This document shows, piece after piece, positions 2,804-48,334 of a stretch of 64,000 nt of DNA (within the stretch, counting starts at the first letter, position 1; each line of letters begins with the position of its first letter). The notes below the pieces were generated by a model. The model ran no database searches, had not been told where the DNA came from, and was given only the letters and a program-made list of their open reading frames with translations. The position numbers were made by a program, and so were the translations under genes. The stretch is from Entomortierella parvispora E1425 (Eukaryota > Fungi > Mortierellomycota), in assembly GCA_020891255.1 (NCBI GenBank), contig BQFW01000008.1, positions 558,001-622,000 on the forward strand, in the 5' to 3' direction.

Positions 2804-5092
2804 AGGGTCGATTCGGGGTATGGGAAGTAAACACGCGTGGGAGAAGAAGGAAGAGAAGGAGAGATGTAAAAGCTGTAACAGGGCTCAAAAGAGAAGAAGG
2901 GGGAGAGCGATTGAGCGAGGGGGGATGGGAAGGGGTGAAAGTAGAGAGTGGAGAGACAAGAGACGAGGAAGAAGAAAAAAGAAAGAAGGAGAAAAGAGGT
3001 AATGAGACGAGAAGGGTCATGAATGAATGAATGAACGAACGAACGAATGAATGGCATTCAAGTGGCGGGGGTGCACACCACAGGGCGATAAGACTCTGTC
3101 ACATCGCGCACGGTGCAGAGGTGTGCAGTCGGCAGTCGTCACTGTGTCCCATGAGGTCATATCAACTCTGCCTCTCACCTCCTCACCTCTTTATCTTCCC
3201 ATCCTCCCACTCTCCATCGATCCTCCTGCCCCCAAGGCCGATTGCGAGCTCGCTGCCTCGCTCGCTGCAGATCGATCTTCACCTGCATCGATGCTGTATC
3301 TCACCCCATGATGACATGTCCACGACCTATGGCCTCTGCATGACGACGACGCCCGTCCCCGTCCCTGTCACTCACTGGCGACTCGCCCTCTTATCCTCCT
3401 ATCTTTTGCAACCACCTTCCTTCACTCGTTACCCACCGACCATCGCGCATTGAGCGCACAATCCACAACCGACCTTTTTTGCCCTGCACCTGACACAGAT
3501 GATAGGACCACAGTGCTCGCCAGGCCCAGTCCGAGTCCTCTGTCCTACCATCGAAAGCAGTCTGCCCCTGACAGATGAGGGCCGAAACAGAACGTACGAC
3601 CGCTGTCGACACAGCTGTCCGCGTGTGATGACCGTCAATCGCGTCTACAATTGTTGACTCTGTGTGCTCGCGTACTCAGTGGACGATATTTGCCTAGGAT
3701 ACCTCAGCCCCTGCCTCCTTCATTCTAGCCTTCTGGAATAACCCCGCTGGCGACCTTACCAGTCCGGGGCCACTAAAATTCGTAATATGTGCCTATGTGC
3801 TTTCCACATTTTAAACGGAAGCATGGCGTGTACTTTCCACAGATACAACAACTGACGCCTTCCTTGAGGGGGTGGCGCTCAGAAAACATGAACTGTCTGA
3901 TACTTTACGCATGTCTTCCACATTAGCTCACCTCGTTTGATCTCAAACACAACCCTCGCCCCAGGCTGTCATCCCTGTGACCAACTTGCAAAGTGGAGTT
4001 GGACAAACGGACTTTACATGTAAATTACGGCGTCAGGACACGCTGGCACCAAAGACAGCAACAATTGGTCAGATGTTGTCAGAACGACGAACGACAGAAT
4101 GTGAGATGTGGCGCTTTTTCTATGTTACCCGGAGATCTTCCCATGGAGAGAAAGAGCTTTGAGTCTGTCTTCAGCAGGGTAGGGGTTTACATGGTACCGT
4201 ACCCTCCTTCGGCCTTCAGGGCACCAATTGAGCCCTGTGCGATTGCAAAGGGGTAAAAATAAATAGCAAGAGCGAATGCAATTTCGATCCCCCTGGGTGA
4301 TTTGCTGAAGTTTATTGCTGGCGTGCCATCTGTCCCCGGTACGCATTGATTGCTGCCAGCAAGCTATACATACCTGGAGGCAAGTACCACTTCGTCTCAT
4401 CGTTGAAAAGGACATCACATAGACCCCTGCTGATCAGGTTGTGGCAGACTATCGAGAAGGATAAAGACCCGCCGAGAGCAGTTCACGTCGAGGTTGACCC
4501 GGCAAAATGGGACGATCCACATTCACCTGCTGGCGTGCTGGGGGAAGGGAGGTTAGTGAGCTGGGTCACAGGAGCCGTTGGACCAGAGAGCACCAGGTCC
4601 AAGGGGAAAAGGGTCGAGAGAAAGTGGCACAAGGCACGAATTGTTCATAATAAATTGGAGAAGCTAGAAACAAACCTTCTTGCTTGGTGCCCGAGAGCAC
4701 TTTCACCCTGCAGTCTCCCATCCGCTTTCTTCGTTCGTTCTCGCTGCACTTCTGTCCATCATCCACGATGAAGAACGCTAGAGAAAAGACAGTGTGGATG
4801 AAGGCTCTTCGTCAGACAACCAGTTGTCTGCATGTTGGGTTTCGTCCATATCACCCAGGGTGCCAGTTTGGATTTTGTTTTCTTTTCTTTCTTCTTTGTC
4901 ACTCTCTTCCCCCCTGTCCCCAACTCCCGCCGTTGTCTGCCTGTCGTGAGGTCGCAGTATCCTTCTCTTCCAACTCCTCCTCATCCTCATCGACACCCTT
5001 CCCGCCCTTTCCAGGGACTTCCCTTCATCCATACCCTAATACCGCTCATCGCACCTTTTCAATCCCTTTGATCTGATAACAGGTCTCCTATA

Positions 5093-43735: not shown

Positions 43736-44201
43736 ATGGATGATTGGTAAGGTTACTCTTAAAGTTGTCTTTTTTTTTTTTTTTTTTTTTAGCCATTGCA
43801 GCTAACTCATTCAAGTGAACACATGTCCGCGTAGTGATGGATGTGACAACTGTCATGAACTGTGCCATGAAGACTGTTACAATGCAATTTGCTGCGATGG
43901 ATGCGACAACTGTCACTTAAACTGTAGCGATGGTGCTCACGATCCCTTGCGTTGGTGGTGGTGGTGGGGTGGAGATAGTTCTGGCAGTGGATCAGCAGCA
44001 GCAGTTCAGCCAATTGTGGTCCCGAGCATGACAAGGCCGGACTATGGGTCAAGCGCGTCGACCTCGAATTTGAACGGCTCGACTTTGCAACGGCAGGCAC
44101 CTCAGTCATCGTCGAGGCGAGAAAAGCGAGCTGAAAACGCGTCGGAGGAAGCGACGTCTCTTCTTGCTCCTCCTCCACCCTACTCTAAATCGACCAAGTA
44201 A
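43736..44201 (+). CDS. Small Cys/His-rich protein with WWWWW and C-terminal PPPY, 125 aa, unknown function
   Basis: Exons 43736-43746 (ATGGATGATTG|gtaagg) and 43835-44201; branch point GCTAAC at 43801; TATAAA at 43713. The three nearer AG acceptors all give immediate stops. Confidence 0.72.
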
Positions 44202-45032
44202 AAACTCGAAAAATAAAAAAAAATACCGGGAACCCGAGCGAGGGAACCGTGCAATGTCAACCTCACGCAATAGCAGCCTGTATTGCCGTAGGAGGATTCA
44301 ATTGAACAGAGCAGTTCCGCCAAAACGGCGCCTTGTCCGCCGATCTCTCCGATGCAAAAAATAGCCCTGACATGATCTGTCGAGAACATGGAGACAGGAC
44401 CTTTTTATTTTAACATTTCAGAAATCTGTCTGACAACAAGCAACAAGGGGAAGATGGCATGAAGGTCAAGGTCAACAATTGTAATACCATGTCGGTTGGC
44501 GCAATTGCTTTACGCCGTGGACCCAACTTTTATTAATAAGTTTTTCTCAGGAAATGGAAAAACGCGATTTTGGTTCTGCACTGACAACCTTGTACAGGAG
44601 ACAACAATGGTCGTGGCGAAGTACACTTCAATCAGGACTGAGAGAGCCATGGCAACAAAAAAAAAAAACGACAGCCCATTTGAACGGAGACCTGGGAAAA
44701 GTAAGTTTCTTATTCCCTTGATCTTTTTCTTCAGAGTTACCCAGTTACCAAGAGAGATCCAATCTGAGCGGGGCCGGGTGGAGGCATGTCGAAGACGTTC
44801 TTTCTTCTGTCTATTTTGGGATGAGGCAGCGCGTCTCCTGCGACACACAACACACACTGCCAGTCCTCTTGAGAACAAAAAAAAGTTTGTTTCGAGTATC
44901 ATTTAAAAAGGACTGGCAGGGTGGTCCATCGGTGGGGCATTCACCTCCGTCCTCCCATTTCGAAATTCACCATTCCATTCACTTTTCGAAGCTCCTTCCA
45001 CGACTCTTCCCTGGCTTTTTTCTTTTGCAACA

Positions 45033-46210
45033 ATGGCTGACTGGTGCGTGCCTGTTCATTTTCTATCGTTCGGATTGTTTTTTGATTTTTTTTTTTTCGA
45101 TCGTGTCCACATCTGATCTGTCCTTCTACCTTCAATTAACGCTTCTTTCCTCTTCTCCAGTGGCGACTGTGGAGGCGATTGTGCGAGCTGTGGAGACTGT
45201 GGAGACTGCTGCTGTGATTGCGGTGATTGCGGTGGATGTTGCGACTGCGGGGTCGATTGTGGTGATGGTTGTTGCCTCTTCTTTGGTGACTCGTTCTGCT
45301 GTGATGCAGGGTTGGCGCCTGTGATGTCTACCGGAGGTAGTGGGCATGGACTTATAGGCGGTTTTGACGGTGGCAGTGGTAGCGGATCGATACCCCTCGT
45401 TCCAACTTTGAACACAGATACCAGCGTCATCCCGGCTATCCATTCTAATTCAGGACCAAGCGTTCGATCAGAGCAGCCGATGCCTATTTTCATGAACTAC
45501 CACACCTATGGCGATGTCCTCTACCGAGATGTTCATGAAGACAATCGACCTCGGGCTGTTAGACGCACTCCGGCTAGAAGACAATATAGCACACTGAGAG
45601 TTCTCAGTGCTTGGATTATTGTTGTCGCTGTTCTCGCATGTGTAAGAATCCCAGCGTTCCTTCTCTGTCGCTTTCATGGACACCAGTACTTTGCCAAAAG
45701 GTCAGGCCGCCGTTATGAAACTCACTCCTATTTCTCTTTTCACTTCACTTATATTGACAGATGGTTGTTACCTTGGCCCTTACAAAGTCTATCCCTTTTG
45801 GAGGCAACTGTGGCAATGCCCATCGTGCTTTATTGGGTATTGGTATCGTACTTGTCCTCGCCGGCGTTGCCATGCCTATTTACTATAAATACCTGCAAAA
45901 CGATCTCATACGCAAGGATATACAGAGGTTCGAGAATGGTCAGCTGCTCAGGTTCCACGAAGAAGAAACTGCTGTCCAGAGAAAGCCTCGATCTGTGCTG
46001 GCATCAAACCGATTTGCAGCCGCGTTGTTCCTGATGTCATTCGTCATGATGTTATTCATGGTGTTGGGCTGGTATTATCTGTGGAGCACAGAGAACAGAT
46101 GCACGGATCCAAAGCTCTGGGCAGTGAAGGGCTGGTTCATTGTTTTCCTGGCTCCAACGGCCTGTATCATCTTCTTTCTGTTGATGTCCATGTTTAAAGC
46201 TAGTAAGTGA
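45033..46210 (+). CDS. 4-TM membrane protein with N-terminal Cys/Asp/Gly-rich metallothionein-like domain, 313 aa, unknown function
   Basis: Exons 45033-45043 (ATGGCTGACTG|gtgcgt), 45161-45641, 45761-46210 (942 nt, in frame). 18 Cys in the first 51 aa; four hydrophobic segments. Confidence 0.8.
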
Positions 46211-46885
46211 GGCTGACCAGCAAAGCCACTTTGGATGATGAGAGAGTCTTTGCCCGTTGAATCAACAAATTGACGAGTCTGTTCCCCTCCTTCAATCTAG
46301 ACAGCGAGAAGAGACTCGAAAGAAAGTTGGAGCGGGAGAAGGTCAAGAATGAAGAGGCCCAAAGGAGGACTGGTCCTCTCATTGACACAGCGCCAACACC
46401 TACGATTTCTACACCTACCTCGCCACCTCCGTCGTACACCCTGTCGCCGGCAGGCGAAGGAAAGCAAGAACTTTGAGAGCAGCTTTGGAAATCACTGCAA
46501 GCATTCTCTAGACCCCAATTGTCGAGTCAATAACATTGTTGAGGAAGCTGTCCAATCTCTTTGCCTGTCTGTCTTGCTGTCGATGTGCATGGTTGCAAAA
46601 ACTTGTGAAGAAAAGGAAAGAATGTGGCATGGAAGCAATTTTGGCTCTCGTGCCCAGAGTATATTCTCCATGTCCCATATCCGCCCTTGTTTGTATTTTC
46701 TTTTCTTTTTCCTCCACTTTCTCCTGATTCATATTGCATTCGCTTACATCTGCCCCACCATCCCTCAGCTCATTTCCCCCCTTTTCACCATTCATCCGCG
46801 TCATTCGACCCTGTCTTTGCTTCGCACCGCACCTTTCAGCTCCTCAGTCACTTGTTCCAGCGTGTTTCCTCTCGTCCACGATATC

Positions 46886-48334
46886 ATGGCGCCACCACAC
46901 CTGTCTCTGGCAGAAGAGGCCCTCCGGGAAGATCGGGCGCCTGGTAGTCTTCTCCGTTTGAACGCCATCTACATACACGCCATACCTGACAAGTGGAGAG
47001 CTGTGGCCCTGAATACCTTCAGCGAGTTTGGCCCCGTCCAACTGAGGCATCTTCAGGGCAGCCTCCTGTCCGCGGGGAAATCGTTTGTTGAGTTGGATGC
47101 AAGGTTGCTCTGGTGCTGTGGTCGCACAGGCCACATTCTTCATACAGAAGCATCGTCCTGGAATCCAGCCTCAGAGGAACAATCGTCATTAGACTCGCCG
47201 CCGTTCACTCTTCACATCAGGGCACTCTCGGATAACTGGCACAATCTGGAGCCATTGCCTTGTCCAGGGCTCGGACTCTCTGGCCGAGGAGGCCTCGAAT
47301 TTCGTGTTACAGAGTCATTGTCGAAGGCCGAGGCGAAGGCACAGTTTCCTTTTGACTCGAGCGAGGGCGACGTCAGTTGTTGGATCGAGATCAGGTCTAA
47401 ATCACTGCCCAACATACATCCTTTGGTTCTTCCCATCCAGCTGCCGACCACCATGCCAACGGCGGCAAGTGACGGCGACATCCGTATCATGAGGCCAATT
47501 CTGCTTCCGAAATGGGATTTGGACCCCACACACACCTGCCGATTGATATTACTTGAAGAGAATCAAAATAACGTCCCTCAAGGCCGTATTTGGGATTCAG
47601 CCTTGGAGCTGGCAAAGTTTTTCTCCACTCTTGTGTCTACGGGGATTCAGGAGGGCCAACCTCCGCTTTTGGCTCGGAAAAACACTCTGGATCTAAGTGC
47701 CGGCACTGGACTTTTGGGGCTCTATCTAGCGGGGTTGGCACAGTTGGAGCTTTTGGCAGAAGGAGAATCCACAAGATCAAGGCTGATCAGGACACAATCC
47801 GATTCCTCAACATCATCTAGTTCTTCCCCACTGACTACTTTGCCTGTCTCTCTTCCGTGCTCTCTCGCCTCGACCTCATCCATGTCCTTAATCAGAGATG
47901 ACAGGTCGTCCAGCCCAGAAGTTGACTCTACGACAGTCATCCTCACAGATGTAAAGGATGCCCTGACTCTGATCAACACCAATGTTCAAGCCAACCAACG
48001 CCGTGTCGCGCCAGACATTACAATAGAGACTAAGGACCTCCGATGGAGCAAGATTAATGTCAGACAGCTAAGCCTCGAGCCGTTGGACACGGTGGTGGCC
48101 TCGGATGTGATTTACGAGCCTGAGCATTTCAATTCACTCCTTGAGACACTGGTTGAGATATGCACTCCGGGGAGAACCCAAGTCTATGTCGGATACAAGC
48201 CCCGTGGCCTGGATCAAGAAGTCGAGGCACGGTTCTTTCGGCGACTGTTTGGACCGGGTGGTGAGTTCACGGTGACAAAACAGTTTCAACTTGAGTATGA
48301 CGTTCGTGTTTTCTGTTTGAGGCGTCCAGAATAA
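46886..48334 (+). CDS. METTL21/Efm-type (family 16) protein-lysine methyltransferase, 482 aa, intronless
   Basis: Motifs GRIWDSALELAKF, LDLSAGTGLLGL, VILTD, DLRW, VVASDVIY, YKPR. Confidence 0.85.
   Translation: MAPPHLSLAEEALREDRAPGSLLRLNAIYIHAIPDKWRAVALNTFSEFGPVQLRHLQGSLLSAGKSFVELDARLLWCCGRTGHILHTEASSWNPASEEQSSLDSPPFTLHIRALSDNWHNLEPLPCPGLGLSGRGGLEFRVTESLSKAEAKAQFPFDSSEGDVSCWIEIRSKSLPNIHPLVLPIQLPTTMPTAASDGDIRIMRPILLPKWDLDPTHTCRLILLEENQNNVPQGRIWDSALELAKFFSTLVSTGIQEGQPPLLARKNTLDLSAGTGLLGLYLAGLAQLELLAEGESTRSRLIRTQSDSSTSSSSSPLTTLPVSLPCSLASTSSMSLIRDDRSSSPEVDSTTVILTDVKDALTLINTNVQANQRRVAPDITIETKDLRWSKINVRQLSLEPLDTVVASDVIYEPEHFNSLLETLVEICTPGRTQVYVGYKPRGLDQEVEARFFRRLFGPGGEFTVTKQFQLEYDVRVFCLRRPE

Follow-up and report, generated by a model that had tools for sequence, protein, structure and literature searches.

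The locus studied here raises the question of whether a tract that reads as about one-third cysteine, set in front of the hydrophobic segments of a fungal gene, is a genuine protein domain and, if so, what it does there. The tract lies in a stretch of 64,000 nucleotides (nt) from Entomortierella parvispora E1425 (assembly GCA_020891255.1, contig BQFW01000008.1, positions 558,001 to 622,000 of the forward strand), hereafter the window, from whose first letter all positions are counted. A preliminary description, drawn from the letters alone, had placed a metallothionein-like domain fused to a protein with four transmembrane (TM) segments at 45033–46210. Comparison with orthologues indicates that the tract is the translated head of an intact single-copy gene of four exons at 45033–46476 (+ strand; 1110 nt in frame, or 369 codons and a stop). 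The best reading of the protein, which is held tentatively, is a membrane-tethered metal buffer or sensor. Mortierellaceae, the family of fungi concerned, are abundant in soil, are used industrially for their lipids and are often dominant in metal-polluted soils.

Coding status of the cysteine-rich head

The cysteine frame offers no ATG, GTG or TTG upstream of 45312, so that the tract is translatable only by way of a micro-exon, whose last two bases open the first Cys codon. Exon 2 begins at 45161, and its first base closes this split TG/T codon. Translated from 45162, exon 2 reads GDCGGDCASCGDCGDCCCDCGDCGGCCDCGVDCGDGCCLFFGDSFCCD, followed by a linker, a basic stretch and the first part of a hydrophobic helix; its beginning, GDCGGDCASCGDC...FCCD, has 17 Cys in the first 50 codons.

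The micro-exon is supported by orthologues. A word search with exon 2 returned a Podila verticillata protein of 410 amino acids (aa) that starts MADCGDCGG, exactly as the spliced gene does. The same start is found in the orthologue of P. minutissima, and the Podila DNA encodes it without an intron. In Mortierella sp. AM989, a Cys-rich open frame lies upstream of the deposited start and is preceded by an 8-nt micro-exon ATGGAATG (locus L003, 4663–4670) and by an equivalent of intron 1 (4671–4771) that is in phase 2 and splits the first Cys codon as in the window. E. beljakovae has an 11-nt micro-exon ATGGCCGAGTG (locus L005, 1060–1070) with an intron at the matching place (1071–1141), and the gene models of Benniella and Dissophora include the Cys domain. 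The tract is kept in frame by eight orthologues from Podila, Mortierella, Entomortierella, Dissophora and Benniella. This in-frame conservation in eight species, together with the conserved intron position, argues that the tract is coding and not an untranslated region (UTR), and so answers the doubt about a downstream start that the preliminary description had itself raised.

The opposite view, that translation starts at a Met near 45327 or that the micro-exon is not spliced, leaving the tract as 5' UTR or repeat DNA, is hardly credible. It could draw on the low complexity of the tract, which also reads open in further frames and on the opposite strand, and on the NCBI models of AM989, E. beljakovae and M. 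alpina, which begin downstream of it. Against this, the Cys frame is open and contiguous with the downstream coding frame, with a pattern conserved in eight species; the ATG of Podila and Benniella stands directly on the Cys frame; and micro-exon and intron phase recur in three species. The comparison thus largely refutes an untranslated tract. Long open reading frames (ORFs) of 145, 103 and 167 aa also run over the tract in other frames or on the other strand (45056–45493, − strand; 44821–45324, + strand; with translations such as QSPQSPQ... and VATVEAIV...). They are by-products of the low-complexity TGY-GGN-GAY repeat, not genes.

Composition of the head

The spliced exons 1 and 2 reproduce the 18 Cys in 51 aa, in CxxC, CC and CCC patterns and with no Lys, that had been reported before; the count includes the split codon. 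About one-third of residues 1–51 is Cys, and Arg and His are missing as well as Lys, while three Phe are present. The CGD repeats of the head map to two short arrays of 9-nt tandem units (45188–45208 and 45210–45234). In all eight orthologues the head has 10–17 Cys, 6–14 Asp/Glu and not a single Lys, Arg or His. An alignment of these eight heads reveals a conserved core, C-x2-C-x2-CGDGCC-x3-GDS(L/F)-x-CC, and a more variable CxxC(G) run on its N-terminal side.

The term metallothionein-like holds for the composition: the Cys content reaches the level used to define a metallothionein (about 30% Cys in CxC, CxxC and CC motifs), but that definition is of a small polypeptide with few or no aromatic residues, and here the Cys lie in a domain of a 369-aa membrane protein and stand beside three Phe. 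As a family assignment the term fails, as no Pfam metallothionein family matches. The N-terminus is not hydrophobic, in agreement with the reported lack of a signal peptide. The AlphaFold2 model of the N-terminal domain (N-domain) has a predicted local distance difference test (pLDDT) value of 47, as would be expected of a head whose fold depends on metal.

Membrane domain and topology

The hydropathy profile shows four hydrophobic segments, the first of which is split by intron 2, and no hydrophobic N-terminus. The head is separated from the membrane bundle by a flexible linker of ~90 residues that aligns weakly with Podila (31% identity). The membrane domain is the best-conserved part of the protein: exon 3 shares 42% identity with the Podila protein along the full domain and 42–49% with the orthologues, and all 31 invariant columns of the family are present in exon 3 of the window. 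The family signatures, IPFG-x-NCGN-x-HR in loop 1, P-x-YY after TM2 and G-x-Y-x-LW-x3-N-x-C-x-D-x2-W-x-VK-x-WF around loop 3, are likewise found in the window protein. The four TM segments with single Cys residues in two short loops (GGNCGN, NRCTDP), as first described, are present, and these Cys are invariant, one in each outer loop (N-C-G-N-x-H-R; N-x-C-x-D). The two probably form a stabilising inter-loop disulfide.

Among five orthologues with complete models, Lys and Arg number 6–8 before TM1, 9–18 in loop 2 and 4–8 after TM4, as opposed to 1–3 in the outer loops; the basic stretch after TM4 corresponds to the RAVKERRLL of the orthologues. The positive-inside rule predicts that both ends and the long loop lie in the cytosol and that the two short loops face outward or the lumen, which agrees with the cytosolic head of the preliminary description. 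Dense cysteines in the reducing cytosol would be expected to serve as metal ligands or as acylation sites. The helices hold no conserved charged residue, which argues against a role of the protein itself as a pore or carrier. An ECC pair directly precedes TM1 in several orthologues but not in the window protein.

An AlphaFold2 model of the membrane domain of E. beljakovae, computed from a 12-row alignment, is a helical bundle with a mean pLDDT of 71. A Foldseek comparison of the model with the PDB gave nothing at E ≤ 0.001, and matches in the ESM Atlas had TM-scores of at most 0.48, normalised by the query. A feature search of the same atlas with the Benniella orthologue did not exceed 0.80, which is the level of chance. 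With VIA-align, designed helical bundles rank first, and the natural membrane proteins that score highest are synaptophysin (Z 9.2; root mean square deviation 3.4 over 133 residues), PRPH2-ROM1 (Z 8.4) and connexin-50 (Z 8.1), all of which fall below the stated noise for helical bundles of about Z 13. As modelled, the fold is a generic tetraspan bundle that allows no assignment to MARVEL, tetraspanin or any other family. The likeness once seen between this TM layout and that of the RING ligase at 12.7–15.6 kb of the window amounts at most to a shared number of helices. Kinship between the two was rejected, exon 3 and the family profile matching nothing else in the 38.9-Mb genome at E ≤ 10.

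C-terminal tail and the end of the gene

The preliminary description ended the gene at 46210. The TGA at this place (46208–46210) lies within a conserved third intron, in the context ...GCT A/GTAAGTGA, a sequence that makes a good splice donor. Splicing from 46202 to 46301 keeps the frame open through (N)SEKRLERKLEREKVKNEEAQRRTGPLIDTAPTPTISTPTSPPPSYTLSPAGEGKQEL to a stop at 46474–46476, and a gene model cut at 46210 misses a tail with a PPxY motif that is relevant to function. The position and phase of this intron are kept in E. beljakovae (after MYHA; ATG TAC CAT GCA G/gtaagt) and in AM989 (after MFLA; TTC CTT GCG T/gtaagt), whose NCBI gene models both employ the equivalent intron. Intron 2 also has a common position in P. 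verticillata, AM989 and E. beljakovae, after ...IIAA, ...VLAA and ...VIAA, respectively, so that all three intron positions of the gene are conserved in orthologues.

PPxY motifs bind the WW domains of Rsp5/Nedd4. The window protein has PPSY (within PPPSY), and Dissophora and M. alpina (both PPAY) and Gamsiella (PPVY) have the motif at the equivalent position. It is absent from the tails of five orthologues, from Podila, Benniella, AM989 and E. beljakovae, and is present in about half of the family. The motif lies in a segment that faces the cytosol as judged from the charge bias.

In most family members the C-terminus is a conserved Q-rich stretch that leads into ...(Q)AGYGASGTGAYC and the stop, with a terminal Cys (proteins P0004, P0009, P0011, P0015, P0016 and P0019). 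An exon for this ...SGTGAYC end was sought as YC followed by a stop between 46400 and 47400 and was found in no forward frame; the protein is therefore taken to end at 46476.

Family range and deposited gene models

Searches were run with single exons of the gene, or with deposited orthologues for complete domains, and the family was defined by alignments; a profile was built from five membrane domains. A word search with the membrane domain gave four matches, only from Podila (three species) and Mortierella sp. AM989. The profile of five domains gave 12 matches at E ≤ 0.001 among 1.84 billion representative proteins; the family profile scores the window at E 5e-69. The named ones are all "hypothetical proteins" of Mortierellaceae (Entomortierella, Dissophora, Benniella, Mortierella alpina, Gamsiella and Podila), and the others are unnamed fragments from metagenomes or read assemblies. 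The homologue distribution, which had been proposed as a check, thus restricts the membrane domain to Mortierellaceae among named matches. In the 38.9-Mb genome the gene is single-copy by single-sequence and family-profile searches down to E ≤ 10. On these comparisons it belongs to an uncharacterised, lineage-restricted orphan family confined to Mortierellaceae. Literature on metallothioneins of Mortierella, on TM-linked metallothionein-like domains and on lineage-specific Cys-rich proteins of Mortierellomycota yielded nothing on it.

Pfam searches with each exon and with nine N-domains returned no significant family (for exon 2 down to E ≤ 10), metallothioneins included. The best noise was CbtA (E 0.029, 14.7 bits against a cutoff of 30.7) and, in one N-domain, Fer4_21 (E 0.054). 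The earlier statement that the architecture lies outside described families has thus withstood Pfam, PDB-sequence, fold and profile searches.

At least five deposited models of orthologues are faulty: the Cys domain is missing, half of TM1 has been lost or the protein is falsely extended. The models concerned belong to the loci L002 (P. verticillata), L003 (AM989) and L005 (E. beljakovae) and to the proteins P0001, P0004, P0006, P0009 and P0015. Those of AM989 and E. beljakovae omit the micro-exon and the entire Cys head, and that of M. alpina starts inside the head (MGDVLCCEP). An early donor costs the P. verticillata model ~17 residues of helix 1, and one Dissophora model has a false N-terminal extension of 51 residues. 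A first exon of 8–11 nt defeats gene callers, and with faulty models deposited the family is under-described in databases.

Possible function

A function as metal sensor, buffer or transporter regulator, as originally proposed, is plausible from the composition. In the reading that we provisionally prefer, well short of conviction, the head would bind Zn, Cu(I) or Cd, ions of soft or borderline character, in the reducing cytosol and hold them in thiolate or thiolate-carboxylate clusters; without metal it would be disordered, as are metallothioneins and phytochelatin-like (acid-Cys)n peptides. The membrane bundle would act as an anchor or scaffold and not as a pore. The PPxY tail could recruit a ubiquitin ligase of the Rsp5/Nedd4 type that controls the residence of the protein or its delivery to the vacuole, and the protein with any bound metal could be sorted there through endosomes. 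The net outcome would be a membrane-tethered metal buffer or sensor with regulated turnover. In zinc ribbons and metallothioneins, metals are held by CxxC(G) knuckles and by CC/CxC clusters; the CxxC(G) spacing of the head, the alternation of thiols and carboxylates and the lack of basic or hydrophobic neighbours in any species favour metal binding.

Several results weigh against this reading. No metallothionein or other metal-binding Pfam family matches the Cys module, and the N-domain profile matches no PDB sequence at E ≤ 10. A word search scored with the same profile gave no match at E ≤ 0.01 among 4159 candidates, and thus no small stand-alone protein; it covers proteins of ~33–105 aa and is uninformative on longer ones. 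The low-confidence head model would be equally compatible with plain disorder. The trafficking step is not general to the family, since PPxY is absent in Podila, Benniella, AM989 and E. beljakovae. The distal tail ...SGTGAYC, in which most orthologues end, is missing from the window protein and E. beljakovae. Finally, dense Cys clusters on membrane proteins can be sites of S-acylation.

The last point leads to an alternative that we consider unlikely, in which the head is a cysteine string that DHHC enzymes palmitoylate and thereby pin to the cytosolic leaflet, in the manner of cysteine-string protein or SNAP-25, with no metal involved; such a string would organise a membrane domain or control the sorting of the protein. 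CC and CCC runs in a protein that is already anchored in the membrane, a head model without folded structure and the ECC pair of several orthologues, at a typical juxtamembrane place for acylation, would be in keeping with it. The head is, however, strongly acidic and free of basic or hydrophobic neighbours in eight of eight species, whereas known acylated strings differ in this respect, and an acidic head would be repelled by an anionic leaflet. Its conserved CxxC(G) spacing is the pattern of a metal knuckle, and these acidic CxxC(G) features make acylation at the membrane surface less likely. Moreover, the module is ~90 residues away from TM1, and the window protein is without the ECC pair. 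Somewhat unlikely, in our judgement, is a lineage-specific structural or scaffold tetraspan whose head is an interaction or low-complexity module without metal or lipid chemistry, and whose membrane domain is the functional core, for example an organiser like MARVEL proteins or tetraspanins. The superior conservation of the membrane domain, with its 31 invariant columns, would suit such a protein, as would the differing length and repeat number of the heads between species and the tetraspans (synaptophysin, PRPH2-ROM1, connexin-50) that lead its natural membrane fold matches. The Z values of these nonetheless stay below what counts as noise among helical bundles, Pfam has no matching tetraspan family, and the strict rule of head composition in eight species points to selection for chemistry and not for a mere spacer.

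We regard as very improbable an iron-sulfur or redox unit, in which CxxCxxC runs hold [4Fe-4S] or [2Fe-2S] clusters or form reversible disulfides that report cytosolic iron, oxygen or redox state at the membrane. The CxxCxxCxxC spacing in the window and Podila is suggestive of it, as is the marginal Fer4_21 match in one of the nine N-domains, but this match is far below the family threshold and is confined to that one member. The CxxCxxC runs vary in number between close species and are absent from AM989 and E. beljakovae, the conserved core is instead CC-rich, and no CP or other ferredoxin signature is present. A further proposal, quite improbable as it stands, is a novel type of gene-encoded metal scavenger, tethered to a membrane, for sacrificial, one-way detoxification: cytosolic Zn, Cu or Cd would be taken up by the acidic poly-(Cys-x-x) head, and metal loading would trigger PPxY/Rsp5-dependent sorting of the entire protein to the vacuole. 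Such a system would need no transporter and would be particular to Mortierellaceae, and it may form a small metal-handling module with an adjacent Cys/His-rich PPxY gene.

If the head binds metal, the protein would be the first membrane-anchored module of the metallothionein type on a tetraspan scaffold and would offer a handle on metal buffering or sensing at membranes in early-diverging fungi; if it is acylated or inert, the gene would encode an ordinary lineage-specific membrane protein. The four-exon model, the conserved micro-exon, the family range and the deposited models in need of correction are solid results, and the corrected model can serve as a template for the re-annotation of orthologues. 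Its features are collected in Table 1.

Table 1. Features of the four-exon gene in the window; membrane sidedness is predicted.
Feature	Position	Strand	Description
Exon 1	45033–45043	+	11-nt micro-exon ATGGCTGACTG (ATG GCT GAC TG): Met-Ala-Asp and two bases of the first Cys codon
Intron 1	45044–45160	+	117 nt, GTGCGT...CAG, phase 2 within the first Cys codon
Cys/Asp/Gly-rich N-terminal domain	45161–45310	+	Residues 4–53; CxxCG, CC and CCC motifs; ends with the conserved CGDGCC-x3-GDSF-CC
Linker	45311–45590	+	Gly/Ser/Pro-rich, then membrane-adjacent basic stretch RPRAVRRTPARRQYSTLR
TM1, first half	45591–45641	+	LSAWIIVVAVLAC, end of exon 2
Intron 2	45642–45760	+	119 nt, GTAAGA...CAG, phase 0, inside TM1
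Exon 3	45761–46202	+	TM1 second half, outer loop 1 IPFGGNCGNAHR, TM2, charged cytosolic loop of ~45 residues
Exon 3 (continued)	45761–46202	+	TM3, outer loop 3 WSTENRCTDPKLW, TM4
Intron 3	46203–46300	+	98 nt, GTAAGT...TAG, phase 1; holds TGA 46208–46210
Exon 4	46301–46476	+	58 residues, cytosolic tail (N)SEKRLERKLEREK...TSPPPSYTLSPAGEGKQEL and stop; PPSY at about 46423–46434

Neighbouring genes

The gene directly upstream (43737–44201, + strand) also begins with an 11-nt micro-exon, ATGGATGATTG, and has an intron at 43748–43834 that is in phase 2 in the first Cys codon. It encodes a head rich in Cys and His, DGCDNCHELCHEDCYNAICCDGCDNCHLNC, then a run of Trp (WWWWW) and, at the C-terminus, PPPPY, with no membrane helix and no Pfam match. 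Its head aligns with those of the family and is the sole other place in the genome that matches the head profile, a score that is partly circular because the neighbour was itself a row of that profile. A partial tandem duplication of the head exon is its probable origin. In P. verticillata, ~1 kb upstream of the orthologue (L002 4785–5000, + strand), an unannotated ORF of 71 aa reads MLEDDDCDCHGCVECANTCCDCLSIFNDPCCFIPSCD... and has one hydrophobic helix, FPYILWGLLFLIFCFIFAMYLMF. Podila thus also has a small Cys-rich gene beside the tetraspan gene, with a C-terminal half that differs from that of the neighbour in the window.

On the downstream side, a 661-aa ORF (46349–48334, + strand) overlaps exon 4 in another frame and enters a gene of the Methyltransf_16 family (lysine methyltransferase; E 9e-24). 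Of this ORF, probably no more than the downstream part is real. The tetraspan gene is followed by a Methyltransf_16 gene in the window and in E. beljakovae alike.

Comparison with known systems

As far as the sequence comparisons reach, the combination of an acidic Cys head with a four-helix membrane protein belongs to no described family, and its parts resemble different systems. Fungal metallothioneins (the Cu-metallothionein type of Neurospora crassa, Cmt1/2 of Cryptococcus) share with the head a high content of Cys in CxC, CxxC and CC patterns, the lack of an aromatic core, a cytosolic location and a predicted absence of structure without metal. They are, however, small soluble peptides, whereas the module described here is fused to a four-helix membrane protein, is rich in Asp, is devoid of Lys or Ser spacers and matches no Pfam metallothionein. 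With phytochelatins and synthetic (Glu-Cys)n peptides the head shares alternating thiols and carboxylates, here as CGD repeats. This likeness is one of general chemistry without an evolutionary relation, for the module is gene-encoded, made on ribosomes with alpha-peptide links and part of a membrane protein. Cysteine-string protein and other S-acylated clusters likewise have crowded CC and CCC runs on a protein associated with the membrane; the module differs from them by its acidic, neither hydrophobic nor basic context, its conserved CxxCG spacing and its distance from the helices.

Among membrane proteins with four or few passes, LAPTM4/5, yeast Sna3 and Bsd2/NDFIP, whose PPxY motifs recruit Nedd4/Rsp5, are also small and polytopic; their ends are cytosolic and the PPxY sits in a tail on that side, and Bsd2/NDFIP act in the control of metal transporters. 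They have no sequence or Pfam relation to the present family, in which PPxY occurs in about half of the members. In CYSTM (PF12734) and PLAC8/PCR (PF04749) proteins, too, a Cys-rich segment goes together with a membrane anchor, and a part in metal stress has been proposed for them. The Cys of CYSTM sit in a C-terminal tail anchor, whereas the module described here is N-terminal, soluble and outside the helices; PLAC8 has a CCxxxxCPC fold of its own. Neither gives a Pfam match, and neither has four helices together with an N-terminal acidic Cys module. The bundles of MARVEL proteins, tetraspanins and connexins resemble the membrane domain in their four helices, cytosolic N- and C-termini and short outer loops with conserved Cys, but the present family has no large outer loop, CCG motif or Pfam match to them, and its fold scores are within noise. 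In kind, the protein is a membrane protein with a Cys-rich, putatively metal-binding cytosolic extension, an arrangement of which many analogues are known.

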